A stretch of DNA of 64,000 bases from Thalia democratica. Its lineage: Eukaryota. Under the pieces are notes generated by a model, which did not search any database, had not been told where the DNA came from, and saw only the letters and a list, made by a program, of their open reading frames with translations. Position numbers and translations under genes: made by a program. This document shows positions 698 to 61,800 of the stretch, in pieces. Each line of letters opens with the position of its first letter. The first letter of the stretch is position 1. The stretch spans positions 73,346,001 to 73,410,000 of the forward strand of contig OZ241829.1 of NCBI GenBank assembly GCA_965202585.1, read 5' to 3'.

Positions 698-1060
698 AAG
701 ATGGCGACTATGTTTAAGCGTAAAATTAACTTTAAAACTTCAAACTGCTGTTTCAGCTTTCAATGGAAAGTGTTTAGTGACTTCACAGTGCTTTAGCTTG
801 AAGCGGTTATCATACGTCACAAGCAGCTTTTACCGCCAAGCTTGAAACTGAACGAGTTCTGTAAAGCCGTACGAGCCGACTCTAAAAATTAAAAATTGAT
901 GATTTAGAGGAAAAGTTTATTAGTGTAAATACATCGCCCAGCAGCTTCAAACTGTTTCATAATGTTAACGGGAGCTGTCGTGTTTCTACTGTCGTGACGT
1001 CACGTTTTACGGCTTGTTTTTATGACGCGCGTTTGTAAATTTGAGAGAACTTTTCATGGA
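698..1060. promoter_or_regulatory. YY1-like plus CRE cassette (divergent copy of the P-type regulatory element)
   Basis: AAGATGGCG at 698-706, TGACGTCA at 995-1002, TGACGC half-site at 1023, then AAATTTGAGAG. The layout matches 3433-3741, 25237-25580 and 43837-44030. Confidence 0.5.
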
Positions 1061-3432: not shown

Positions 3433-3741
3433 AAGATGGCGACCGTGTTTTAGCGTAAACTAGTTTGAGTTCTTCAGCTTCATACTGCTGCTTCAGCTTT
3501 GAAAGCAAAAGCCGTTTGTGACGTCACAAACCGCTTTTGCCTCCAAGCATTCGAAGCGCTGAACCTTCAGGGTTGATTAAGACATTTAAACCGCACAATG
3601 CGGTTGTAAAAATTTAATAGTGCTTACAAACGCAGATTGTTCAAGACAAAGCGTATGCGGTGCAGTTTGGATGTGAATAGTATTGTGAAAGCGGGTGCTG
3701 GTGTTTTATGAATTGTGACGTCATCATTAGTTAGTTTCAGT
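3433..3741. promoter_or_regulatory. P-type cassette: YY1-like motif, palindromic CRE, second CRE (copies at 45106-45430, 48217-48550, 60961-61300)
   Basis: AAGATGGCG 3433-41; 36-bp near-palindrome 3505-3540 centred on TGACGTCA; second TGACGTCA 3716-23. Interrupted by the 3742-8940 insertion and resumes at 8949. Confidence 0.55.
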
Positions 3742-3750
3742 GGGACACGT

Positions 3751-4314
3751 TCAAAATCCACCCGCAATCAAAATCCACCCGCGATCAAAATCCACCCGAT
3801 CAAAATCCACCCGATCAAAATCCACCCGATCAAAATCCACCCGAGTCAAAATCCACCCGATCAAAATCCACCCGGGTCAAAATCCACCCGATCAAAATCT
3901 ACCCGGTTCAAAATCCACCCGATCAAAATCCACCCGGGTCAAAATCCACCCGATCAAAATCCATCCGAGTCAAAATCCACCCGAGTCAAAATCCACCCGT
4001 TCAAAATCAACCCGGTTCAAAATCCACCCGATCAAAATCAACCCGGTTCAAAATCCACCCGATTAAAATCAACCCGATCAAAATCAACCCGAGTCAAAAT
4101 CCACCCGAGTCAAAATCCACCCGTTCAAAATCCACCCGTTCAAAATCAACCCGGTTCAAAATCCACCCGATCAAAATCCACCCGGTTCAAAATCCACCCG
4201 ATCAAAATCAACCCAACTCTAAATCCACCCGAGTCAAAATCCACCCGATCAAATTCCACCCGGTTCAAAATCCACCCGGTTCAAAATCCACCCGATCAAA
4301 ATTAACCCGAGTTC
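3751..4314 (+). repeat. 15/16-bp minisatellite AAAATCCACCCG(ATC/GTTC/AGTC/GGTC), left arm
   Basis: Directly visible tandem units; source of the spurious ORFs 3715-4305 and 3740-4066. Confidence 0.95.
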
Positions 4315-7300
4315 ATTTTTTTTCGAAATAAGAATTAATTTCTAATAGAATTTTGTAATATTGAATAAAGTTATATGTTTAAACAACTATTGGTATAAAA
4401 AAGAGTAAGTATTTATAAAGAAAGAAATTTTAATTTATTTAATAAAATAATTAAAAAAATAAGTTAAATAATATAATTAAACAGCATTAAAAAAAAATTC
4501 ATAGTAGCTTTACAAGTATTTAAAATGTTTATAATTTGTTAATGTTAGTAGTGTTGGTGTTACTTTTAAAAAAAGAAGTTAAAAAAAAATAAAAAAAGAA
4601 TTACGCTCAGTTTCAATCAATTTAAACTTCCTTCTAATTTAATTTCCCAAAGTCAATTATAATTAAATAAAATATTTACTAAGGATAACTCATAGTAAAT
4701 TAAAATATCAAAACTATAGAAGTTTATAAATTAGAAGAATCTTTAATAACATTTATTAAGCTAAAGAAAATTACAAAAATCAAATACCAAATAATGTAAA
4801 TTTATGGAAAATGTTAATTAAATGTTACAAAAAGAAAATTAAAATATTAATCTAAAATTTTTGAGCTTTTTTTTTTGATGTAAAAAGTTTTGTGTTTTGT
4901 GCTTTACTTAAATTTCAATTATAGTATTACATACAATATTTTATTATACAAAAATTTCAACTAACAGTGTTTATAAAAAATAGAATATAGATAAAGAATA
5001 ATATAAAACTGCTACGTGATAATAAAATAAAAATCCTTTGTTAAATTTAGAAAAACTATCACCTATTAATTATATTTTAAACATTATTGTTTTCGACGTG
5101 GAAAAGACGTTAAAAGATATTTTGGTGTGCGACTCGATAACTTTAACGTATGTTCGTGCAAGAGGACTTAGGACCAAATATTTTGAGCGCTTTAATTTGT
5201 CGTTTAGTAAACAATTTATTGACGTTTATTTTATTAGTAATTTTTAAAAACAGAACATAAGTTTTAATATAAAAATACGAAAACTAATTTACTAAAAATA
5301 TAAATGAGGAATATGTAAAAAATCAATAACTGTTTTAAAACAATTTTATTGTTTTCTATCTAATTTTTGTTACAAATATTTTTTAGTTATTTTTTTCAAT
5401 TTATACAATAATTTTAGCTGCTATTATCTTTTTTTCAAAGTGTTTAAGTTAATTGAATTTTATTTTATAAATGTTTTTTTTATAAACCATCTATTTTTGA
5501 AAAAACTAAAAATAGTTTCGTCTAAAGTAACTAAAGTTCTAAGTTATATTTAATTAGATAACAACTTAATTTGCTAGTTTTTAACTAATAGTACAAATTA
5601 AAAAGCTAAACATTTTTCTATGAATTCTAAAGTCCTTTACATAAAACAAATATCGACTCTACAATTCATTGAGTTTGCTCAAATAGCTTGTAAATTGCAA
5701 CTAAAAAAGTTAGTAGTTAGACTTGAGCTAGGGAAATTATATACTTTAGAATTGTAGTAGCAAACAAATAAGTTGAGTTATTTAGAAATGACACTATATT
5801 TATAACAAATATTACGAAAAAAAACTTATAACATTTTTAATTTATTATTAAAATGTTCTATTTTTACATAGGTTCATTAAAAAAAGTATGTATTTCAGAC
5901 AAGAGAGTTTAAGTTCAAGTATAAGTTATTTTTATGAATTTTTGTACCAGACTGTATCAACTTAAACAATCGTTTTATTAATTTTATTAATAGGTTAAGG
6001 CCAGTTTTGAAAGTGATTAATTGAGTGGTTTTATAAAATTTAATCTCCTTTGGTTAACGTTTAAATTTTAAATTTAAAATTGTCTAATCTAAAACTTTTA
6101 ATTTACATGCGATAAATTTTCTTGAATTAATTTCCGACAATTTAAGTTAAAAGCTATAACTGCATGTTTTTAATTAATTAGTTGTAAACGTTTTATGTTT
6201 TTTTATAAATATAAAGTTGCATAGAAATTGTAATTAAGTAAGATAAATTATTATTTACTGTTCAATATTATATTGTTAATTGATATTTTTTAATTCATAG
6301 AAATGGAAATGTTATTATTTACCACTATTTTTTTAAATATAATCTTCATATAAAAAAAGTCCATTTGTTAAAACTTAAGAAATTTTAAGTAATTTAATTA
6401 AAAATGAAACAATACTAAAATTAAACAAAATTTTATATTGGTTATAACGAATTTAAACGGTAAAGACAACTATTGTTATAACAAACTGTTTAGTAGACAA
6501 GTTAACTTTAAAAGCGTGAAAATTTTGTCTAACAAATAAAACCGAAAATTAATAAATATTTAATTTAAAGTTAATATTGAAAAATCTTTAAATGGCAATA
6601 CAGTAAAGGTAACTATCTAAAGTAAATTAGTGACCTTTTCTTAACAAAGAGAACTTTTATAAATAAATATCTTGTTAAGACCTTTCACATAAAAAAATTA
6701 TATTAAAAAAAACACAAACTAAATGAATTTTAAACGTTTGCCTTTTACTTTTTTGTAATTAAAAGTAACGAAGATGCAGTTGCATTTAATCAGAGTCGGC
6801 AGACAATTCTTTATCTCGGGCCAAATTTCATGTTTCAATTTTTTCCGCGAGCCGTTGTTTTATTCAATTTTTGTTTTTAATCTGTTTTAGTCACGTTTAT
6901 CTACTTAAAGGGATCAGGCCTGGCATATTTAAAATGTATATTTTTTTCTAAAGTCGAAAACTATTTTTTTAAAAACTTGTGTCATATTATTATTTCTATC
7001 ATTATTTACAAGGTGTAGATCATTAAAAACAGGTGTAGATCATTATGTACACTTTTTATAATCAATTTCTATTATTTTATTTGTATTTTCTTTTTAGTAG
7101 TTAAAAAAAATCTTTTTTTATTTAATGCACAGCATATCACGTATTTAAAATTTTAGTGATTTTGTTAAACTAGTTAAAATATAAACAAATATTAATACTT
7201 TCATTTTAAACAGTGTAAGTTTTTCTTTTAAAACCTTTAAATACCTTAATAATCTATCTAAAGTTTTTCGGGTTGCAACTTTTTGAAACAAAAAAAGTAC

Positions 7301-7669: not shown

Positions 7670-8305
7670 AATTAAATGGATTAATTTGTAGTATAAATGG
7701 TAGCTTTCACTTGTAATACTCAGTTTTTATAAAAATTATATCGTGTGACGTATTTGTTTAAAAATTACTTAAAAGTTCTAAATTATTAAATTTTATACCT
7801 AGAAACAGTAAATTATAATTGATTGTCGTGTAATTGTGATTGAGATAATACAAGATTATTTTTTCTGGCACATCCTTTAGTTTTCTAAAAGTTTTAACAT
7901 AGTCATATTTGTATAGTAAAACTTTAATTTATTTATTCTGACGTTGTTAAACTTTTATTAGCTCTTATAGTTATACTTATATCAAAAACAACAGTACCTT
8001 TAAAAGCTGCTTGCCGGCTGTAGCTATTCAAAATTATATTCAGTAATCAAAAAAACAAAAATACTTTTGTCAAAAATTCCTTATAATAAGCAAAAATACC
8101 AAATAACAACTCAAAAAACCTCACAAAATAAGTTCAATCTGTAGTACAGTTTTTATATTCTTAAGTCAATTTATAAGGGACAAAAATACAAGATTTTATA
8201 AGTGTTTTTTAAATAAAACTTGTTTAAGATTGGTACTTTAGAGTGGTGAGATTTGTTTAAATGATACTTGATTTAAAAAGAAATAAATAAACAAGGTGCT
8301 TGTTT

Positions 8306-8931
8306 CGATTCGGTTGGATTTTGACTTTGGTTGATTTTATGTCGGTAGGATTTTGACTCGGGTTGATTTTAACTCGGATGAATTTTGATCGGGTGGATTT
8401 TGACTCGGGTGGATTTTGATCGGGTGGATTTTGACTCGGGTTGATTTTGATCGGGTGGATTTTAAACCGGGTGGATTTTGATCGGGTGGATTTTGAAACG
8501 GGTGGATTTAGAGTTGGGTTGATTTTGATCGGGTGGATTTTGAACCGGGTGGATTTTGATCGGGTGGATTTTGAACCGGGTGGATTTTGATCGGGTGGAT
8601 TTTGAACCGGGTGGATTTTGATCGGGTGGATTTAGAGTCGGGTTGATTTTGATCGGGTGGATTTTGACCCGGGTGGATTTTGATCGGGTGGATTTTAACT
8701 CGGGTGGATTTTGATCGGGTGGATTTTGATCGGATGGATTTTGAACCGGGTTGATTTTGATCGGGTGGATTTTGACTCGGGTTGATTTTGATCGGGTAGA
8801 TTTTGACTCGGGTGGATTTTGATCGGGTGGATTTTGACCCGGGTGGATTTTGATCGGGTGGATTTTGAACCGGGTGGATTTTGATCGGGTGGATTTTGAA
8901 TGCGGGTGGATTTTGATCGGGTGGATTTTGA
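8306..8931 (-). repeat. Same 15/16-bp minisatellite in inverted orientation, right arm
   Basis: GATTTTGATCGGGTG / GATTTTGAACCGGGTG units; shares the rare variant AACCCAACTCTAAATCC with the left arm (about 4209 and about 8505). Confidence 0.95.
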
Positions 8932-9002
8932 TAGTATACCGTTTCAGTATATGATGTAAAAATATGAGAGAGTTTTTTACTGTGTTCGATTATCGGTTTG
9001 CT

Positions 9003-25236: not shown

Positions 25237-25580
25237 AAGATGGCGGCAAAACTTGAGCGCTGGAAGTTTGTAGTTTATAAGCTGGAAGTTTGCTTCAAAA
25301 AACTTAAGTAAGGTCACAAAACTTCTGCTAAAAAAAAAACCGTTTGATACGTCACAAGCGGCTTTTACCTCAAGAACCGAAGCGTTAACGTTTCACAGAA
25401 AGCATGTTGGGCCGCGCTCGGCAGGCCTTAAAATTAATCCCTTAGAAGAAGACAACTTGAGCTAAATAAGCGTGCTGCCACTTTGAAGGTTAATCATACT
25501 GTGAAGGCGTTCAATCGTTGGTGACGTCACTAAAAAGTTATTTTGATATATGACGCAAGTAAAAAATGTGAGAGAGTTTT
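25237..25580. promoter_or_regulatory. YY1/CRE cassette
   Basis: AAGATGGCGGC 25237-47, degenerate palindrome at about 25338-25370, TGACGTCA 25522, TGACGC 25551, then AAAAATGTGAGAG. Confidence 0.55.
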
Positions 25581-35579: not shown

Positions 35580-36720
35580 CTTTATTTTATAATTTTTAAT
35601 GAATAAAATAACAATCAAATTTTTTCTTTCCAATAAATTTCGTCAAATTCTCTTCAGAAAAATTACAATTGAAACAATACAATAAAACACAAAAAGTATA
35701 TATACAAAAATTTTACAAATTAATTATCTGATCAATTAAGTAAAAGTAATTGTAATCAACAAAAATGTAATCAACAAAAACTTTAAAAATCAACACAAAA
35801 TGGTCTTAACTAAATAAGGCTAAGGTGTAGTCAAACTCTTTGTTTTTACATAAGTTTGGTTTGTTTAAATGTATTAAAATGGCTTCAAGTCTAATTAATT
35901 CCAATGTATTTGAACATTGTCGCATTACACTGAAATTAGATAATGCAAACTTTTTTCCACAACTTGGATTATTCACAAGTCGTTCTGCTATCGCAGATTT
36001 TTTTATTGCATTTTTGACTGCAACACTCTTTTTTTCTTTTTAGTCTTTAATATATGAAGTGATACACTTTGGAACATGTTCATTGTCCATATTCATGTCA
36101 AAACCAATACTTCAACGTTCGGGAAAAGACCTAATGACACCTCAAGAAAAAAGTCTTGTAGTTTACAAGTTTAAATGCTGCTGTGACATTAGCTACATTG
36201 GTCAAACTTCTCGACACCTCACAACTAGAATAAAGGAAAACGTTCCCAAGTGTATCACTTCGTATATTAAAGACGAAAAAGACGAAAAGAGTATGGCAGT
36301 CAAAAATGCAATAATGAAATCTGCGATAGCAGAACACCTTGTGAATAATCCAAGTTGTGGAAAAAAGTTTGCATTATCTAATTTCAGTGTAATACGACAA
36401 TGTTCAAATACATTGGAATTAATTAGCTTGAAGCCATTTTAATACATTTAAACAAACCAAACTTATGTAAAAACAAAGAGTTTGACTACACCTTAGCCTT
36501 ATTTAGTTAAGACCATTTTGTGTTGATTTTAAAAATTTTTGTTGGTTACATTTACGTTTACTTAATTGATCAGTTAATTAATTTGTAAAATTTTTGTATA
36601 TATACTTTTCGTGTTTTATTGTATTGCTTCAATTGTAATTTACCTGAAGAGAATTTGACGAAATGTATTGAAAAGAAAAAAAATTGAGTGTTCTTTCATT
36701 TATTAAAAATAAAAATAAAT
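35580..36720. mobile_element. 5'-truncated Penelope-like retroelement with an inverted duplicate of its 3' end
   Basis: 35580-36081 is the reverse complement of about 36238-36720; GIY-YIG ORF in between; absent at the homologous site near 58575. Confidence 0.9.
36082..36510 (+). pseudogene. GIY-YIG endonuclease C-terminus of a Penelope-like element
   Basis: VVYKFKCCCDISYIGQTSRHLTTRIKE...SAIAEHL...; frameshift near 36428 into LEAILIHLNKPNLCKNKEFDYTLALFS*. Confidence 0.9.
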
Positions 36721-42052: not shown

Positions 42053-44169
42053 CTATTGAAAAATAGAAAATTAGATATGTATTTAAATTAAGATTTTAAC
42101 TGTAAGTTTGATAAGTTTTGCTAAGTTTGCTTCAAAAATAGTGTAGCATTGTCGTTTATACTTATAGTCGTACGATGGTGATGAGGACGATAAGGTGTTT
42201 AGACGTGCTAGTCTTACCACCTTGCACTTCACCCTCAATCAGCGCTCGCTTTGCTGTTTCAGTTATCTTCAGGAAACAGGTGGTGAGCGAGTCCTAAAGT
42301 ATCGAGATTGTTTGTAAACGCAGCCGAAATCGGTCGGTTTAAAGACGATAAGAGCTTAAATAAGAGCAGTACCGAGCTAGATGAGCTAATGATCGCGACT
42401 AACAGAGAATTTTCCAAAGAATAAGATTGAAAAAAAAAGAAAACAACAAAATAAGAAACTGATGCAGAGAGAGAAATTAGAAACAAGGTGAAATTAACTT
42501 CATGTGTATTTTTTTTTACTATTTGTTAATGTTATTTAAACCATCACTGTGCTTAAAATTATATGTAATTTGTATGCAAGTTATTTTATTTGCTTTGTAT
42601 ACGCATAGCCGATTTCAGCGGAAAGAGTACTTATAATTTTAAGCAATATTCGTTGAGAGCTCTCAGAAAATAACCTTTACCAAAAACTCTGAAGAAACTT
42701 GATTTTTTTAGTATACCAACCTATTACCTTAAGTTTGTACCAATAATAGCTGAGAAAAAACATTATGAAAAATTTGTAAAGTTTAGTAAAAATACTAACA
42801 GTGTAGAGTTAATTTTATACCGGTTAAGTTATTTGAGAAAAAGAAATGTTTCACTTATAATAAATACATGTTTAACAACCGTACATTCTAGATAGCTTGG
42901 CAGTTGTTATTGTTGCACACAGAAAACTAAATTTAGAAGACTTGAAATCCATAAAAACTTTGCAAAACATTGCTGAAGTCCAACCTCAAAAAAAAAAAGG
43001 GTGTACTCTAAATTGTCAAGAAGTCAAAATGTTATTTCTGAACAAATTTAAGACTTATTTTTGTTTTGAAAGAGAACCAAAATACTTTAGTTGGTTCATA
43101 TTAACACTTTTTGCTTAAAGAAATTGATCCCCGTTAATAACAAATACGTGTTTACAATGAAGTATAGAAGAACAAAATATTAATGGTAGCATCAGTAATA
43201 AACAAAGAGGAAGAAGTAGAACATAAAGCTTGTATCAAAATTAATGTGAAAATTTTAGTAAACAGCAAGCTATTGTCAGTAACAAGTGCTCAAGATATAG
43301 TTTCAATAAAAGCTCTTTCGAAAAAGCTTGTAGACAGTAACAAATAGAAAAATTTATAGGTACACCAAAAGCATACAGTACACAGATCATAGTTTCTCAC
43401 AAAAAAAAAAGCATTAAACTTAATTAACTTTAGTTTTTATTAAGGTAAATTATATAAAGGTAAAAATATATTTATTACTTTTGAAAAAAAAAATTACTGA
43501 GTTTCACCGCAGAGCGGATTTTCAAATTGCAGATCTGTAGTAAAATAATAATGGTAAAAATTTATAAGTGGTAAACCTTTAAAGGTTGTTCAGCGTCAAT
43601 ATAACTATTATTTTACAATTTCTTTTAATTTTTTTTCAATTATTTCTTAACAGTTTTTAATTATTTGTCATTTTTACCATTATTTTTTTACTACAGATCT
43701 ACAATTTGAAAATCCACTCTGCGGTAAAACTTAGTCGTTGTTATTTCTCAAAAAAAAAATTAATTAGCGATCTTCCTTGTTGATAAAAATAACACAATAA
43801 ATATAAAAGAAAGTTGCATTAGTATCGAGCTTAAGAAAGATGGCGACTTTGTCTAAGCGTAAATGTGTGATATTAAACTTTGGAAGCGAAGCCTCGTTTA
43901 GTGACGTCACACAACTTCAGCTTGAAGAAGTTTTGTTGCGTCACAAACAGCTTTTACTTCGACTGCCTAAGCGAAGCTTGAGACTGAATCAGCAAGTTTC
44001 TTAAAGCCGCACTAGACGACTGTAAAAATTAGGATTCAAGTGTGAAGAATGAACAGTAGCAGCTAATTTTGTACAGTTTTTTATTTATTATTTTAATGTT
44101 TTTGACTTTTACTTGTAATATATAAACGTGAGTTTAAATAAACATAGTATAAACTTTTTTTTATTTTGA

Positions 44170-47100
44170 AAAAGTTACTCAACTTTAATAACAATAAATA
44201 TTTTTTACCGACCTTGATGTAGTATTTGTACAAATTATTTTAAATTGTCCAAATTTTAAGTTCTACACGGTAAAACTTTTCAACACATGTATAATATGTG
44301 ATATTGTTAATCATCATTATTAGAGTTTATTATGCCTTGATGGACTCGGCCATTAAAACCTGAGCCGCTTAAAAATTAAAGAAGAAAAAAATATTAACAA
44401 CGCTTTAGTTATTTTCAAACTATTAAATTTAGTTAAGTAGCCTTTTTAATGGCAATTATACACTAAATTTTTTTTTTTTGAAAAAAATTGCAATAGTTAT
44501 AACTAACCAAAACGTTCATAGCTTTGTTGTTGTTAGATCAAATCTGACGTGACCACTTCGTTTGCGACTGACTAAGCTGTAAAAAATATTTGTTATTAAT
44601 TTAATTTTAAAATCTGTTTTAATATTTCTGTTTAATGTAATTTAGATTTAAACAGATGTACCGAAGAAAAATTATTCTGATAATAATTAAACAGTTGGTA
44701 GGTAATTTTTCACAGTTGTTGAACCACATGTATATGAATAAAATTGCTTAAAAAATTGCTTAATTTATAATTTAATATGGTTTAAACAATACTTTTATCG
44801 AAATAAAAACTTAGGTAACGGTGTTTAAACAATAAGAACCTTATTTATTGAAATATTGTAAACAAAACTTTGTTTATAAACTCGATATCAAAAAAAAAAA
44901 AACTTTTTTGTTACAACAGTTCAATGCTTTAAAGATACAAGTTAAAAACTTAATAAATATTCAATTTCGAGTTGTCAAAAGTTTATTTAGTATTTGCCAG
45001 ATTTTATTAAAAACTTAAGCTTTTTTTGTAGTAACATTTAACATTCAATTAATACTAACAATAATGAAAAAGAGATCAATACTTAAAAGTAGTTCAAGCG
45101 TAAAAAAGATGGCGACTGTGTTTTAGCGTAAACTAGTTTGCAATTTTCAACTGCATATTGCTGCTTCAGCTTTAAAAGTAAAAGAAGTTTGTGACGTCAC
45201 AAACTTCTTTTACCTCTAAGCATGCGAAGCGCTGAAGCTTCAGAGTTGATAAATACATGTAAACAGCGCAGTTCTGTTGTAAAAAATCAATCATCCTTAA
45301 AATAGATCCATATTGACAAAAGGTCGGCGGTGCATATTCTAACTGACTAGTAAAGCGAGCGCTCGTGTGTTATGAATTGTGACGTCATGACTAACTAGTT
45401 TCAGTATATGATGTAGAAATATGAGAGAGGTTTTTCCTGTGTTCGATTATCGGTTTGCTTTCTTGTGCACAATCGTCACTTTTACACGACACTCTTTTTC
45501 ACGAAGGGACACTTTTGCACGAGTGGAAAAATTATGCTCGGCGTCACTTCTGCACGGCGACTTTTTTGCACGGAGGGTCACTTTTGCACACAGAGTCATT
45601 TGTGCACGGCGTCAACTTTGAACAGCGACATTTTTTACGATGACATTTTTCCACGGCAGCATTGTTCACTACGATACTTGTGCACAACGTCATATTAATA
45701 CGGTGATTTTTTTGCACAGCAAAATTTTGGCACGATGACTTTATTGCTCTTTTTATTTTCACGCAACATTAAAAAATAAACTTTCCATACAACTCAAAAA
45801 TAACCATTAAGTAAAAATCTTAAACTTCTTAAACTTCATAAATAACTAACATAATTAACTAAATTATTTTTCTTTAGTTTAATATTTAATTAAAGTTAAT
45901 TAAAGTATTTGTTAAACAACTATTAAAGTTAATTTTAGATTTAATATAAGTAAAAAATCGGTCTCGGAATTCGTGTTTTAAAGTCCAACTTCATTAAATT
46001 TATATTTCTGTTTAAAACTAATGAAATTCAATTATTTTCTTTAAGTCATTCAAAATGGTTTTAATGTAATAGTAAAAAACTGTACTTATCTATTATATTT
46101 TAATCAGGATTATAAATATGAATTAAAAGAATTGTAGTACGTTATTACATTGGTCTATGTATAACTTTAAATAAAAACTTTCCATTAAAAATCAATCACA
46201 TTTTATTCATTCAAAGCAATTTGCGTTTAAAAGCGAATTTTATTTAAGTCGACAAAATAAAAGTATATTTAATCTATTTAAATTTTTATTAAAGAAAATA
46301 AAGATTAGAAGCGTGCAAAATAAAAGCTCCGACCAAAATTGACTAATTGATTAAAATTTTTGCAATTCATAAGTATATCCCAGAAAATATAAGCTGTGCA
46401 AAAGATACGCTTTGCAAAAATATCGCCATGCAAACGTAACGTCGTGCAAAAGTTTAGACGTTTAAAAATTTTGTCCTGCAAATATGACCCTGTGTGCAAA
46501 AGAGTCGCCGTGCAAAAATGTCTCTTCGTGCCAAAGTGACGTCCGTGTGAAAGTGACGCCGTGCAAAAGTGTTCCCTCGGGCTAAATAAACATTCGTGCA
46601 AAAGTGTCCCCTCGTGCAAAAGTGACACCCACCCATATATAGTATGCCATAAGGTGCTAATACCACTGTTTTAATGAAACTCGAGGATACTGACATTTTT
46701 TTCTGTCGAAACAATCATAGTTTAGATAACATATTGTCGCTTGATACACTAGTTTTTAAAAACAACTACCGAAATTGTTTTACAAATATGTACAAGACAA
46801 CAAAAGTATTCATTTGCCTACAAAAACTTATGTCGACTGCAGCTTCAATTGTTTTCTTTGATACGATAATTTTATAGTTTCATGATTAGTAAGTTCTATC
46901 AGAGCTTTAGCTGTATTGACTGCAGCTCGCACATTAGAAAAATTTTAAGTACGATATATCAAAAATTAAAAAAAAAAAAAAACTTAGCAGGAAAATAAAC
47001 GACAATTATAAACCTGAGAAGAAATATTTTAGCATTATTCATGTCATACTTTACCACTTTAAAATATCTTACGGTTTAGGCTATCATAACAAAATTTATA

Positions 47101-50100
47101 TCAGTTTAAAGCTCTATTGTTGAATGTTTATATAATTTTTAGTTTTAGTTTTAGATAGTAAAGCTTATGCATTTTTTTAACTTAAACTATAAAATTGAAA
47201 TTTTTTGTACAAATTTTTGTCTATTATTTTAAAAGCTTTGACCCTTACTTGCAGTATAAAAACGTAAGTTAAAATAAAAATACATAAAAACTTTATTTTT
47301 TCGAAAAATTTATTCCACTTTAACAGTAAGTATGGCGTTAAATAATTTTTACCGACTTTGATGTAATAATTGTACAAAATACTTTAAATAGTCCAAACTT
47401 ATATAAATTGTAAGACTTTTAAACATATGTATAATATCGTTGATAAACTAAGAAAATATTTTAACAACGTTATAGTAGTTTTAAAACTATTAAACCTAAT
47501 TAGGTAGCCTTTAAATGGCAATTATACACTAAAATTGTTTTTTTTTCCAAAAATTGCATTAGTTAGTAGTGAAACATTAATTTATAACTAACCAGAATGT
47601 TCAAAGATTCGTTGTTTAATCTAAACTGACGTAATTACTTCTTTTGCGGATGACTAGGCTGTAAAAATTATTCATTCATAATTTTATTTCACATAAGTTA
47701 GTTTAATGCTGTTTTTAGATTAAAACAAATGTACTGTAAAAAAATATTCTGATAGTAATTAAACATTAAACATTCGATTGGATTTAAGGCAAAGTTTAAA
47801 GTTTAGTTAAGTTTTAAAATCAATATAAAACAATAACAATTATACAAGCTGTATGTAGCTTTCTTTTTTCTTTTAGCTAATTTTCAAAGCAAATATTGTT
47901 TAAGAAAAATTGTAGTTAATAAAGTGAGCTTAAAGTTGAAATGCAGTTGATATTAAAATATCGTTAATAACTTATTTATAAATTCTATTTAAAACATAAA
48001 ATTTAAAAATAGAATACTTTTTTTGGTATAAGAGTTTAATTGTTTTAAGAGTTATAAAACATAACAAATACTCAATTTCGAGTTGTCAAAAGTTTATTTG
48101 GTATTTGCCAGTTTTTATTAAAAACTTAAGCTCCTTTTATAGTATCATTTAACATTCAATTAATGCCAACAATAATGAAAAGGAGATCAATACTTAAAAG
48201 TAGTTCAAGCGTAACAAAGATGGCGACCGTGTTTTAGCGGGAATTAATTTGTGTTCTTCAGCTTCAAACTGCTGCTTCAGCTTTGAAAGCAAAAGCCGTT
48301 TGTGACGTCACAAACGGCTTTTGCCTTCAAGCAGAAGAAGCGCAGAAGCTTCAGAGTTGTTAAAGACATGTGAACCGCGCAGTGCGGTTGTAAAAATTCC
48401 ATTTTCACCATGATCATATCGTCAAAGACAAAAGGTAGGCGGTGCAGTTTGGATGTGACTAGTATTGTGAAAGCGGGCGCTCGTGTGTTATGAATTGTGA
48501 CGTCATGATTAACTAGTTTTAGTAAATGATGTAAGAATATGAGAAACATTTTACTGTGTTCGATTATCGGTTTGCTTTCTTGTGCACGAGAGTCACTTTT
48601 GCACGGCATCACTTTTGCACGGCATCACTTTTGCACGAGTGGAAAATTTTGTTAGGCGTCACTTTTGCACGGCGACTCTTTTGCACGGAGGGTCACTTTT
48701 GCACGGCATCACTTTTGCTGGAGTGGAAAATTTTGCTCGGCGTCACTTTTGCACGCCGGCTCTTTTGCACGGAGGGTCACTTTTGCACACAGAGACATTT
48801 GTGCACGGCGTCAACTCTGAACAGCGACATTTTTTACGATGACATTTTTCAAGGGAGCATTGTTCACAACGATACTTGTGCACAACGTCACAATTATACG
48901 GTGATTTTTTTGCACAGCAAAATTTTGGCACGATGACTTTATTGCTCTTTTTTATTTTCACGCAACATTAAAAAATAAATTTTCCATACAACTAAAAAAA
49001 ACTATTAAGTAAAAACGGAAATTTCATACACTTCATAAATTAACTAAAATATTTTTCTTTAGTTTAAAAATCGTTTAGAAATAAAATTAGATTAAAATCT
49101 TTGTTAAACAACTATTAAAGCTAATTTTAAGCTCAAGAAAATATAAATAAAAAATCGGTCTCAAAATTCGTGTTTTAAAGTCATACTAACTTAAATTTAT
49201 ACTTTTGTTTAAAATTGATGAAGTTTAGTTTATTATTATTTAAATTATTTAAAATTATTTTAATTTTAAAGTAAAAAACTGTACTTACCTATTATATTTT
49301 AATTAAGATTATAAATATAAATTAAAAGAATAGTAGTAGATTAATATATTGTTCTACGTATAACTTTAAATAAAAACTTTTCATTAAAAAACTATCACAT
49401 TTTATCCATTCAAAACAACTTGCGTTTAGAAGCGAATACTGCTTAAGTTGACAAAATAAAAGTATATTTAATCTATTTAAACTTTTATTAAAGAAAATAA
49501 AGATTAGAAGCGTGCAAAAGTGAAGTTCCGTTCAAAATTGACCGATTAATTAAAATGTTTTCAGCACATAAGTATATCCGTAAAAATATAACGCTGTGCG
49601 AAAGATACGCTTTGCAAAAATATTGCCATGCAAACGTAACGTCGTGCCCAGTTTAGACGTTTAAAAATTTTGTCGTGCAAAAATGACCATGTGTGCAAAA
49701 GAGTCGCCGTGCAAAAATGTCCCTTCGTGCGAAAGTGACGACCGTGCAAAAGTGATGCCGTGCAAAAATGTTACCTTGGGCTAAATAAACGTTCGTGCAA
49801 AAGTGTCCCCTCGTGCAAAAGTGACACCCACCCATATACAACATGCCATAAGGTGCTAATATCACTGTTTTAATGAAACTCGAGGATACTGACATTTTTG
49901 TCTGTCAAAACAATTATAGTTAAGATAGCATATTGTCGCTTGATACACTAGTTTTTAAAAACAACTACCGAAATTGTTTTACAAATATGTACAAGACAAC
50001 AAAAGTATTCATTTGCCTACAAATGATCATCTATTAATGGAAAATTTTCAAATAACGTAGCATAATTTGTAGATGTTGCAATTCAAGTCGTCAGTGATGT

Positions 50101-52225
50101 AATATGTGTGCTGACATAGAACTGTTTCATTGTAGAGAACCTCAACATTAGTAAAACAGCCTGAAATGGAATGATGCTCACTTTTTACCGCAGTGATTCT
50201 AGACCAGGGTTTCCAAAATTATTTTTTAAAAAGCTTTTTTAAAGAAATAAAAAAAAGTTATGATCCTACCTAACAGATTATAGAATAACAGATTTACTCA
50301 AAAAACTACCATTAAAAATACGTAAAACCGTTTTTTTTTTTAATTTTCATCAGCTGTTCTGGAATATCTAGTTTAAGTTTCAAATTACGACCTTTTTTCC
50401 CCCTTTGCCCTTTCCCTCCGTGGCTCCTTTACTGCGAATAGTCCCCAAGGGGACCACTTCGCTAATTTTTTGAAACCCTTTTCTAGACCTACTAAGTGTT
50501 TGTGCACAGTAGGTTTAGATATGTTAGTCAAATTCTCAGGTCGTTAGAAAAGTAGGGTTTACAAAAATGAGCTATTATGACGTCAGAAGTAACACAAAAA
50601 GTTCTAATGACGTCATAATTCACTCAAGCTTCACAAGCCGAATCTCAAAGCGAAATCACCAACAGGATTTGAAGTCAGAGACACAACCGTTTCAAATTAT
50701 TTCAAATGATTGTAAAAATAATCAAAGTCTGCTCTTTCTAAAACAAACAGAAATTAGTCGAGCCTCTAAAAAGAGATACCTCTCGAAAACAGACAACCTA
50801 TCCAGTGGAGTTGTAGACTGGTCAACAAAAAGAGTATGAGTTTAAAAGGAGTAAACAAAACAATAACCTGAAAAAAAAAAAACAGAAACAATTGCTGAAA
50901 GACACCTGGTTTGATATCGAAGACATTCAAATCACAAAGAGTGGATGGACAAGGATATCATTGGCGACAACAAATACATTAGTAAATAAGGTTTTATTAT
51001 TTGCCGAACATATATATGAACGATTATATTATGTGCTCAGAACCAAAAGACATAAATTTTTTATGCAATCTTTACAAATTAAGATGGTGCTTACCAATGG
51101 TTCTTGTTTGTTTTACTATTTGCCGCTGCAATTTAAACTACAAAGTAAGCAAGTAGGTGCACGACTTTTATTGATAAACACATGCAACATAAATTTGCCT
51201 GTTTCCACTAAATGTAGTACCACAGTAGATATCTACTGATTATCCAACAAATTTTATCCAGCTACCTTTTACTGAAACTAGCAGGTTTTCAGAGTTGATT
51301 GAATAGATTTATGATTCGGGTGAAGTATAATGAACGTGAAACGCATTTTTGAATACAGCACGTACAATTATTCTTAAGTTTACGTCTTTTAACTAACTTT
51401 TAGGATAAAACATGAATAGTAGAGTATATCTCAATGTATTGTTTGATAAAAAACAAAACTGTGCAAAAAGAGGTTTAATCTGACAACTTATACAGTAATA
51501 CAAATAACACCAGTGCATGTATATGATATGGGAATGGGTCAAATATTCACGAAGGGACACTTTTGCACAAAAGGTCACTTTTGAACGAAGACGCTTTTTC
51601 ACGATGAGTCACTTTTGTACGAAAACATTTTTGCAAGTGTTAAACTTTTTTTTTTTTTTTATCTATTCTTTATTTTTTTTTTTTTGATCTTTTATTATTA
51701 TAGATAAAAAAATCAAAAAAAAAAAATCAAAAAAAAAGTTTAACACTTGCAAAAATGTTTTTGTACAAAAGTGACTCATCGTGAAAAAGCGTCTTCGTTC
51801 AAAAGTGACCATTTGTGCAAAAGTGTTCCTTCGTGAATATTTGACTCATACCCAAATTTTTACTATCACTATTAGCCCTTACCTTACCCTGGACGGTATT
51901 TTTTTTTCGTTATTAATTAGTTTTTTAAATTAGATTTATAGCTTTTTAGTTTTTTTTGTTATTATTATTACACCTAGCCCTTACCCTCAACCGATTTTTT
52001 TTTGTTGTTTTTCAATAATAGTTTTCATAATCTATTCTTTTATATCTATTTTTACTACAACTGCTACCCCTAACCCTTACCCTTGGTCGGTAACCTCTTT
52101 TTAATCTTTTTTATTATTTTATTATTTTATTTTTCATTTTTCGTATCGTTTTTTTTTCTGTTTAGTTTTATTCTCGTGCAAAAATGACCCTTTATGTAGA
52201 AATGATCTTCCTTGCAAAAGTTCTG
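44170..52225. repeat. Two head-to-tail copies of module P (44170-46822 truncated; 46823-52225)
   Basis: Junction TTTGCCTACAAA|AACTTATGTCG at about 46822; both copies are colinear with 1590-12500 and 58840-64000. Confidence 0.9.
51530..51853. repeat. Foldback (about 125-bp inverted arms, A/T-tract spacer) in the TGCACG MITE
   Basis: Arms differ at about 5 positions and share variants absent from the 11.9-kb paralog, which lacks the second arm. Confidence 0.85.
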
Positions 52226-58839: not shown

Positions 58840-61800
58840 TCTTTTTTATTTGGTTATGACGTCATAATTATAGTATGGATAGAATAATTTTTTATAACTA
58901 TAGTATATACCAGTGGTCGTCAAGGTGTACAATGGTGCACACTAGTATACACGAAATTTTTTTTGGTGAACAAAATTTAGAGATTACACAAAAAATACAT
59001 AGACTTAGATTAGATATGTGGTTAATACTAAATAAAGTATTTAATGAATACTGAACTGGGGATTTTGTAGTAATTGCGGAGAAGTGTTCAATTAATAAGT
59101 ATGTGAGAAAAAGTCATATAAGTAAATTAATATTGTGAAAATAAGATAAAACAAATAAAGAGGTTAAAAAAAAATAAGCTTTAGTCGATAAATGGTTTGC
59201 ATGTAAATACAAACTGATTTATGACTTTTAAGGAGAAATGAACTTAAAAAAGTGTTTATTAAAATTAGTTTTTTGGGTGCACTGATTTAGTTTTTTGCAG
59301 CTTGGTGTAAACAGAACTTGATTAGCTTGACGACCACTAGTATATACTATATGTAGCTGGTAAAATCAAGTATACGAATTATCCTAAAAATTAAGCGAGT
59401 CGCTGCAAGTGAGAGCTATGTCGAACTGCTTCGATTTTTAGGTGTGACATCATAATAACCGAATTAAGTAATTTTAAACTGATTCGTCTATATTACTCTG
59501 AAGTAATTTCAGAGACATACACAAGCTTTCAAAACAATGAAGCAAGTAGATTAACAGATTAAAAACAAATTTATTTAAACTTATGTCAATTGCAGATCCG
59601 ATTGTTATCTTTGATACGATAATTTTATAGTCTTACATTATTTAAGTTCTACCACAGCTCTAGCTGTATTGACTGCAGCTTGCAAATTAGAAAAATTATA
59701 AATACTACATGTCAAAAAATTGAAAAAATAACTTAGCAGGAAAATTAACGAGAATTATAAACTGGAGAAGGAATATTTTTATTTATGTCATACTTCTTCA
59801 CCTTACAAAAGTCTTATAGTTTGGGATATCATTTATTTGGGTTTAGTTAAACTTTGTATCAGTTTAAACCACAATTATTCTATCTTTGTATATTTTTACA
59901 AGTTTTAGATTTATATACTTGAGCTTAAACATCTTTTTAAAAAGCTTAATTCATAAAATTGAAGCTTTTTGTACAGATTTTTTATTATTTTAAGAGTAAT
60001 AAATAGCTTTGACCTCTACTTGCAAAATATATAAATTTTAAAATAAAAATACATAAAAATTTTTTTTTTTCTTTTGAAAAAGTTATTCCACTACAACAAT
60101 AAGTATAGTGAAAAAATTTTTTTATTCGACTTTAATGTAATATTTATAGAAGAGTCTTTAAGTAATCCAAATTTTAAATTCTAAATTGTAAAGTTTTCAA
60201 CATATATATTATATGTGATATTGTTAGTTGAATAAGAAAATATATTCACAACGTTGTCGTTATTTTAAAGTTATTTTTAATTGTTATGGATTTTAAATGG
60301 CAGTTCGAACTTTTTTTTTTGCAAAAAATAGCATTATTAAGTAGTGAAATATTAGTTTATAACTGACCAGAATGTTCGTAGCTTCGTTGTTGAATCTGAC
60401 GTGATAACTTCGTTTGCAGATGACTAGGCTGTAAAAAATTTTATTTATAATTTAGATCTACATAAGTTTGTTTAATGCTGTTTTTAGATTTAAACTAAGG
60501 TACCGTAGAAAAATTATTTTGATAGTTATTAAACATTTAGTAGGCATTTTTTTTACAGTTTTTGAACCATATGTAAACGAATAAAGTTGCATTTAAACAC
60601 TTATTTACTTTATTTCAATCGATAGTTTAAATCAGTTTAAACAATACTTTTTATTAAATAAAAACTTAGGTAACGGTGTTTAAACAATAACAATATTATT
60701 TTATTGAAATTTCGTAATTTTTTTTAAACCCGATTTAAAAAATAAAATAAAGAACTAGAATATTTTTTTGTTATAACAGTTCAATGCTTTAAAGAGTTAT
60801 AAACTTAATAAACACTAATTTCGAGTTTTCAAAAGCTTATTTGATATTTGCCAGTTTTTATTAACAACTTAAGCTTTTTTTTATAGTATCATTTATCATT
60901 CAATTAATACCAAATAAAAAATGAAAAAGAGATCAATACTTAAAATTAGTTCAAGCGTAACAAATGGCGACCATGTTTTAGCGTAAATTAATTTGTGTTT
61001 TTCAGCTTCATACTGCTGCTTCAGCTTTGAAAGCAAAAACCGTTTGTGACGTCACAAACGGCTTTTGCCTTCAAGCAGAAGAAGCGCAGAAGCTTCAGAG
61101 TTGTTAAAGACATGTAAACCGCACAGTGCGGTTGTAAAAATTCAATAGTAAAACATAGAAAATTACAAACGCAGATTGCCAATGACAAATGGTTGGCGGT
61201 GCAGTTTGGACGTGACTAGTATTGTGAAAGCGGGCGCTAGTGTGTTATGAATTGTGACGTCATGATTAACTAGTTTCAGTAAATGATGTAAAAGTATGAG
61301 AGAGGTTTTACTGTGTTCGATTATCGGTTTGCTTTCTTGTGCACGAGCGTCACTTTTGCACGGCATCACTTTTGCACGAGGAGACACTTTTGCACGGCAT
61401 CACTTTTGCACGAGTGGAAAATTTGCTCGGCGTCGCTTTTGCACGGAGGGTCACTTTTGCACGGCACTTTTTTGCTCGAAGTGTCACTTTTGCACGAGCG
61501 AAAAATTTTGCTTGGCGTCACTTTTGCACGGCGACTCTTTTGCACGGGGGGTAACTTTTGCACACAGAGTTACTTTTGCACGGCGTCAACTTTGAACAGC
61601 GACATTTTTTACGATAACTTTATTGCTCTTTTTATTTTCACGCAAAATTAAAAAATAAACGTTTTATACAACTCAAAAATAACCATTAAGGAAAATCTGA
61701 AATTTCTTACACTTTACAAATTAACTAAATTCTTTTCCTTCAGTTAAACGTTTGTTTAGAAATAAAGTTAATTTAAAATATTTTTTAAACAATTATTGAA

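Follow-up and report, generated by a model that had tools for sequence, protein, structure and literature searches.

Template switching is known to remodel inverted repeats in several systems. At yeast promoters such as GRE2, it frequently homogenises and expands the inverted repeats found at dimer-type transcription-factor sites (PMC13100816), and the correction of quasi-palindromes has been described in E. coli, yeast and T4 (PMC7202029). For RNA stems, template switching explains their multi-base compensatory changes as well as the origin and maintenance of the stems (PMC8794818). Here we describe a family of palindromes centred on TGACGTCA, the word of the cyclic AMP response element (CRE), in a 64,000-nucleotide stretch of the genome of the salp Thalia democratica (G000:C5:73346001-73410000, referred to as the window; the genome measures 801 Mb with 29% GC). 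Two of these palindromes are perfect over 36 bp and differ from each other by paired, complementary changes. The account that we favour, to which we give about an even chance, is that quasi-palindromes around a conserved core have been re-perfected by copying from one arm to the other, in the manner of template switching. About 30 copies of the sequence module that carries the palindrome were analysed, at least 30 having been found in a census. The palindromes of the window are the following, where k denotes the distance from the palindrome centre.

48289-48324: perfect 36-bp palindrome of arm type I (GCCG/CGGC at k9-12), centred on TGACGTCA
45178-45213: perfect 36-bp palindrome of arm type II (GAAG/CTTC), centred on TGACGTCA
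3505-3540: palindrome copy with one mismatch, C:C at k10
61033-61068: palindrome copy with one mismatch, A:C at k12
48261-48352: extended imperfect dyad of 92 nt around the type I palindrome; homologous stretches at 3477-3568, 45150-45241 and 61005-61096

A reading of the stretch from its letters alone (the sequence-only reading) had reported two perfect palindromes with three paired differences per arm, and two further copies with one mismatch each. Direct comparison confirmed all of this, and an inverted-repeat finder recovered both perfect palindromes. The label of CRE-centred given in that reading also holds at the sequence level. Types I and II differ by complementary pairs at k10, k11 and k17 on both arms, and a fourth compensated pair of 45178-45213 was observed at k22, outside the 36 bp (G:C versus A:T). 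The imperfect pairing claimed beyond the 36 bp was seen as well: mirror pairing is exact up to k18 and imperfect from there to k24-25, and when bulges are allowed the fold reaches about 38 bp over the dyad of about 92 nt (approximately 48260-48352). As RNA this dyad folds at -49.3 kcal/mol (z -8.1), with both strands able to fold, and as DNA at -33 kcal/mol (z -6.4). A perfect palindrome of 36 bp has an expected count of about 2e-5 per 64 kb at the composition of the window, and the 18-mer core gave six matches in the window against 0.00 in shuffles; chance is therefore excluded as the source of the palindromes. Short-read contigs from two DNA runs match 45184-45388 and 48295-48470 without differences and end within the palindromes, as is typical of k-mer assemblers. 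The palindromes are therefore not an artefact of long-read assembly, although the runs and the assembly share one sample. A look for RNA runs containing the stretch found none.

The paired changes between copies that the sequence-only reading had pointed out were then found to be part of a wider pattern in a covariation analysis over the copies. Among the 11 close copies, both sides have changed at five pairs, in nine cells. For the cells changed on both sides, for the covariation score and for the percentage of paired cells, the observed values were reached by none of 500 shuffles; the count of five both-side pairs was reached in 6 of the 500, and the signal was lost when the partner columns were slid out of register. 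Over 20 copies, all four Watson-Crick forms (CG, GC, AT and TA) were observed at k10, three forms (CG, TA and AT) at k11 and k17, and TA, AT and CG at k8, with k5-7, k9, k12-16 and k18 practically invariant. Complementary double transversions were observed in eight cells (five events), compared with the 0.4-1.5 expected from a neutral simulation that was deliberately generous (20 independent lineages, 14 pairs, a per-arm divergence of 0.10-0.20 and a transition fraction of 0.49 as measured in the flanks). The double change from C:G to T:A requires only two common transitions, so that part of the covariation is unsurprising. The arm covariation, which exceeds both the shuffles and the simulation, is real, and the excess of complementary double transversions shows that some pairing-preserving process is at work.

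The distribution of diversity along the dyad is informative about this process. Pairwise diversity was found to be 0.02 in the 8-bp core, 0.08 at k5-9, 0.25 at k10-18, 0.11-0.13 at k19-46 and 0.14-0.16 in the near flanks. Variation is almost absent from the central 18 bp, which are perfect in nearly all close copies, and is highest at k10-18. Purifying selection on a stem would be expected to slow its evolution relative to the surrounding sequence; these arms evolve faster and are therefore considered to be unconstrained. Only 2 of the 11 close copies are perfect, and four of them carry 3-5 mismatches among the 14 pairs. Furthermore, the type II arm word occurs on only three arms in the whole genome, two of them belonging to 45178-45213 and the third being the right arm of the copy L016 (C5:73343993), where it stands opposite an unrelated left arm with five mismatches. 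The type II arm would thus have arisen locally and been copied in inverted orientation at least once, being left uncorrected in L016. Where several mismatches have been resolved, the changes were placed on one arm: at k10, k11 and k17 on the left arm of 45178-45213, at k11 and k17 on the left arm of L018, and at k17 and k19 on the right arm of L017. Such clustering in three lineages (about p = 0.06, post hoc and with uncertain ancestral states) points to copying and is suggestive only. Mismatch events of the G:T and A:C kinds occur in similar numbers (approximately 7 versus 8), so that neither strand is favoured as the transcribed one. In addition, a 12-bp palindrome (CTGAAGCTTCAG) lying 35 nt downstream has decayed in four lineages without compensation.

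From the combination of covarying arms, a conserved core, unconstrained arm sequence and a donor arm state present elsewhere, we infer the following course of events. The seed would be the conserved 18-bp core GTTTG-TGACGTCA-CAAAC, an extended form of the word that is found genome-wide. During replication or repair, the nascent strand could fold back on this perfect core and copy the opposite arm, a template switch of the kind known as quasi-palindrome correction. Several mismatches of one arm would be converted together in such an event, and the result would resemble multi-base compensatory evolution, with the outer arms being repeatedly returned to complementarity. The core itself is probably held by a dimeric reader, by default a basic leucine zipper (bZIP) protein of the CREB/ATF type, in what appears to be a GC-rich regulatory or exon-like module. 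Such a module stands at the head of tandem units of about 5 kb.

The core word is abundant in this genome. TGACGTCA was observed 29 times in the window against an expectation of 0.62, and its surroundings are richer in GC than the average (0.348 versus 0.292, P < 0.0002). Genome-wide, the 12-mer TGTGACGTCACA was found 1210 times, compared with 17 for the reversed control. TT flanks occur at 441 of the 2420 core flanks of the genome, and the symmetric 16-mer was found 42 times where 40 are expected from independent flanks. There is therefore no general symmetric extension of the word, and the long arms are peculiar to the family of this array. Two other regions are rich in related sites: C1:98.31-99.11 Mb holds seven exact 16-mer palindromes (TTTGTGACGTCACAAA) at distances of 24-250 kb, and many half-extended sites are spaced by about 1.5 kb or 3.2 kb at C1:101.65-102.20 Mb. 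Both regions resemble further arrays of this word; the search with the 400-bp module gave no match in them. The default reader of the palindromic TGACGTCA is presumably a bZIP dimer of the CREB/ATF type, which would make the word a putative promoter CRE. The salp genome papers make no mention of palindromes or of TGACGTCA, and the 12-mer TGTGACGTCACA was found in the literature in unrelated papers only.

Dyad architecture varies between paralog groups. The 11 close copies have one core, and the more distant groups have two CRE-like cores placed 34-40 bp apart, the one-core and two-core forms differing by an indel (insertion or deletion) of about 34 bp between short direct repeats. In the L032 group both cores are enclosed by the same outer arms to form a nested, nearly perfect palindrome of 70 bp (about -61 kcal/mol on either strand), the cores of the L024 group lie in separate local palindromes, one for each, and in the L021 group the arms at the first core are bulged. 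The L021-group cores, TGACGTAA and TTACGTCA, are exact reverse complements inside a 14-nt inverted repeat, which indicates that complementarity is kept there at the cost of the consensus word. These cores were observed in L021, L022, L025, L026, L030, L031, L035 and L036 (C5:72.45-72.96 Mb), and TGACGTTA was seen at the second site in L021 alone. The window holds three distant paralog modules. The sequence-only reading had called the distant paralogs at about 800, 25340 and 43925 only quasi-palindromic; the stretches near 700-900, 25240-25440 and 43835-44030 are indeed so, with two CRE-like cores each.

43837-44030, plus strand: distant paralog module with CRE-like cores at 43902-43909 and 43936-43943 in a nested quasi-palindrome
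25237-25440, plus strand: distant paralog module whose second core, ATACGTCA, has type I arms complementary at 10 of 12 positions
698-900, plus strand: distant paralog module with two degenerate cores, quasi-palindromic

Several observations weigh against copying as the source of the perfect arms. The ancestral states are ambiguous, as the phylogenies of the upstream and downstream flanks conflict in a mosaic manner, and the copying event is deduced, none having been observed directly. The k22 pair of 45178-45213 is compensated between A:C mismatches at k19 and k21 that were not corrected, which places it outside any single copied tract. Mutation clusters of the reverse-complement-copy kind showed no general excess (one versus four and none in the controls) in a crude, locus-wide scan of twelve paralogous segment pairs, whose criteria were so strict that the 45178-45213 event itself went unflagged. 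Furthermore, dyad symmetry was observed in every paralog group, whether single, adjacent or nested, and a second stem-loop downstream of the palindrome keeps its position with a sequence that has changed between groups. Selection on structure would explain the persistent dyads and the kept stem-loop position too.

We consider selection on RNA or DNA structure, the two taken jointly, to be rather unlikely. As DNA, the selected feature might be a cruciform or hairpin, or a long symmetric site for a dimeric or tetrameric protein with about 18 bp per half-site; it might serve in the control of transcription, in replication or in recombination inside the array. The invariance of k5-9, k12-16 and k18 on both arms across groups that are about 30% different would suit such a feature, as would the dyads in all groups, the stability of the DNA hairpin and the recombination of flank phylogenies within about 100 bp of the module. 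However, a sequence-specific protein would not yield covariation at k8, k10, k11 and k17, and the genome-wide sites with the same core lack the symmetric extension. Imperfect copies are also common, and the uncompensated decay of the neighbouring CTGAAGCTTCAG palindrome speaks against a maintained structure. A selected DNA structure or long protein site is therefore regarded as quite unlikely.

Selection at the RNA level would mean that the module is transcribed and that its hairpin of 60-90 nt acts as a precursor of the microRNA (miRNA) or small interfering RNA (siRNA) kind, or as a leader or exon structure, with pairing kept by compensatory selection. We hold this to be quite unlikely. The strong fold, the genuine covariation, the compensation at k22 between mismatches and the second stem-loop at a kept position with changed sequence are consistent with it, and the minus-strand RNA fold was more stable in 10 of the 11 copies. 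This last advantage arises because two shared ancestral A:C positions, k19 and k21, become G:U on that strand, and the wobble events as a whole have no strand bias. Conservation is highest in the would-be loop and lowest in the arms, opposite to what a miRNA precursor shows. In a perfect palindrome only 4 nt remain for the loop, and 3-5 mismatches are tolerated in many copies. Rfam gave only generic hairpin matches to the dyad, at 21-35 bits against gathering scores of 56-105 and on both strands; over the whole window nothing was found at gathering score, the best permissive match having 34.5 bits against a gathering score of 105. The sequence-only reading had left the choice between a selected hairpin like a pre-miRNA or siRNA precursor and perfection by template switching. 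The hairpin found no support in the tests run, and template switching fits best, given the suggestive clustering on one arm, the unpaired donor arm, the fast arms and the even wobble counts.

A related proposal is that the dyad as such is a selected nucleic-acid structure, the TGACGTCA copies acting by self-pairing or mutual pairing as RNA or single-stranded DNA. We regard this as improbable. If it were true, the arm covariation and the TGACGTAA/TTACGTCA pair would be the first structural clue to the reader of TGACGTCA.

Neutral decay with ordinary conversion between paralogs, in which a few old perfect variants are shuffled and chance double hits are aided by an AT-biased mutation spectrum at G:C pairs, is very improbable. 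In its favour stand the mean of about 1.9 mismatches per 14 pairs in each copy (near the decay of a perfect ancestor at 10-25% divergence), the C:G to T:A doubles that need only two common transitions, and the mosaic flanks that show active conversion. Against it, simulation gave 5-20 times fewer complementary double transversions than were observed, the genome holds no other donor of the type II arm, which would thus have arisen here and been copied inverted, and CpG hypermutability cannot be invoked where CpG observed/expected is about 1.06. That CpG ratio was observed throughout the window, within and outside the GC-richer islands, and gives no sign of methylation-driven CpG loss; hypermutability at k10 was ruled out on the same ground.

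The palindrome has a fixed position within a GC-richer module of about 250 bp, in which a AAGATGGCGAC box is followed, after about 89 nt, by the palindrome, a GAAGCGCTGAAGCTTCAG segment, a short stem-loop and an A-rich end (..AAATT). The stem-loop keeps its position in the distant paralogs, where its stem sequence is different. Genome-wide, AAGATGGCGAC was found at 286 sites, compared with 344 for a reversed control that is inflated by a repeat; at about three times the composition expectation, this would be a modest enrichment at most. The features of the module and its unit in the window are as follows.

48217-48227, plus strand: invariant AAGATGGCGAC box, similar to the YY1 consensus, 89 nt upstream of the palindrome centre
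698, 3433, 25237, 43837 and 45106, all plus strand: AAGATGGCGAC box of other copies
48373-48389, plus strand: downstream stem-loop with a 6-bp stem, followed by the A-rich ..AAATT
48498-48505: second TGACGTCA, some 190 bp downstream; its flanks are non-palindromic in every copy
3716, 45380 and 61255: second TGACGTCA of other copies
48150-48950: GC-richer island (GC 0.34-0.50 versus about 0.20 around it) containing the module, the second CRE and a minisatellite

Past the second TGACGTCA, every unit carries a GC-rich minisatellite (45421-45700, 48556-48936 and 61313-61651); it makes up the bulk of the GC-richer island and has a strong skew of T over A and G over C on the plus strand. The module lies near the start of the tandem units, within which identity is flat at 85-92%. 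In a genome-wide DNA search, module matches were confined to C5:72.45-73.71 Mb and a single unplaced contig, on the minus strand at 72.45-72.96 Mb and on the plus strand at 73.18-73.71 Mb. The module is therefore a locus-specific array and not a mobile element, and a metagenome scan with the 18-mer gave 23 contigs, all of them unrelated, with no relatives of the module.

The flanks of the module were observed to group differently upstream and downstream, in 44945-48400 and in loci L012-L018. All four combinations of two upstream with two downstream flank types are present, which indicates recombination or gene conversion within about 100 bp of the module. On the downstream side, the flanks break directly after the stem-loop and its A-rich tail.

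Several identities for the module were tried and rejected. The terminal repeat of a miniature inverted-repeat transposable element or foldback transposon does not fit copies that are not dispersed and a dyad that is internal to a conserved module. A conserved coding exon was rejected, as just 3 of 31 copies have an open reading frame (ORF) that starts at the ATG of the box and runs through the palindrome, paralog groups do not share one frame, and no Pfam match or exact database entry was found; no ORF looks coding. Judged from the sequence, a spliced-leader RNA gene was rejected because the putative exon varies, the primer-binding site of a long terminal repeat element because the tRNA-like complementarity ends after about 11 nt, and a Helitron end because there is no CTRR end. 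No tRNA or transfer-messenger RNA genes were found in the window.

Other repeats were also noticed in the window. Two minisatellite arrays with units of 15/16 bp (31 bp), at 3702-4352 and 8234-8977, are mutually inverted and flank about 4 kb inserted in unit A1, just past the second TGACGTCA. At the end of unit A3 (51526-51857) lies an inverted repeat with 152-nt arms that are 90% complementary and a 28-nt A/T-rich spacer, which gave weak generic matches to miRNA models on both strands. A near-identical peptide is encoded by two ORF fragments on opposite strands at 35809-36439, which indicates an inverted duplication; these fragments have no Pfam match, and a guess of GIY-YIG is unsupported. 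A decayed module head (AAGATGGCAGC and a ..GCGTAAAT.. segment) without a CRE core was seen at 450-520, 250 bp upstream of the module at 698.

If arm-to-arm copying is the source of the perfect arms, the locus would be a natural example of textbook compensatory changes that need no functional paired structure. Covariation alone would have misled towards a structured RNA, and it is no proof of a functional structure. The case also marks a 1.25-Mb tunicate array of CRE-word modules, and links it to the genome-wide excess of the CRE word in this salp.

Among described elements, the canonical CRE bound by CREB/ATF bZIP proteins has the identical 8-bp palindrome, conserved relative to its surroundings and set in a GC-richer island. 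However, bZIP contacts explain at most about 12-14 bp, whereas the palindrome here extends over 36 bp. Animal pre-miRNAs are similar in hairpin length (60-90 nt) and in the stability of the fold. They differ in that the loop is conserved and the arms variable here, the stem is perfect with a 4-nt loop, and the same hairpin is present on both strands without a family match. The template switching described for RNA stems is alike in that one reverse-complement copy event explains multi-base compensatory changes; it concerns known structural RNA genes, whereas the functional part here would lie at the dyad centre and not in the stem.

As in the yeast, E. coli and T4 cases, an imperfect inverted repeat surrounds a binding word of the dimer type, several bases seem to have changed together on one arm so that complementarity was restored, and arms would be lengthened or perfected with no selection on their sequence being required. 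The family described here differs in that its changes are found among the tandem paralogs of one tunicate array and not among strains or species. It also differs in having perfect arms of 18 bp and in switching between one-core, adjacent two-core and nested two-core forms. The palindrome family is best explained as an instance of the template-switch kind, to which it would add a metazoan tandem-array example.

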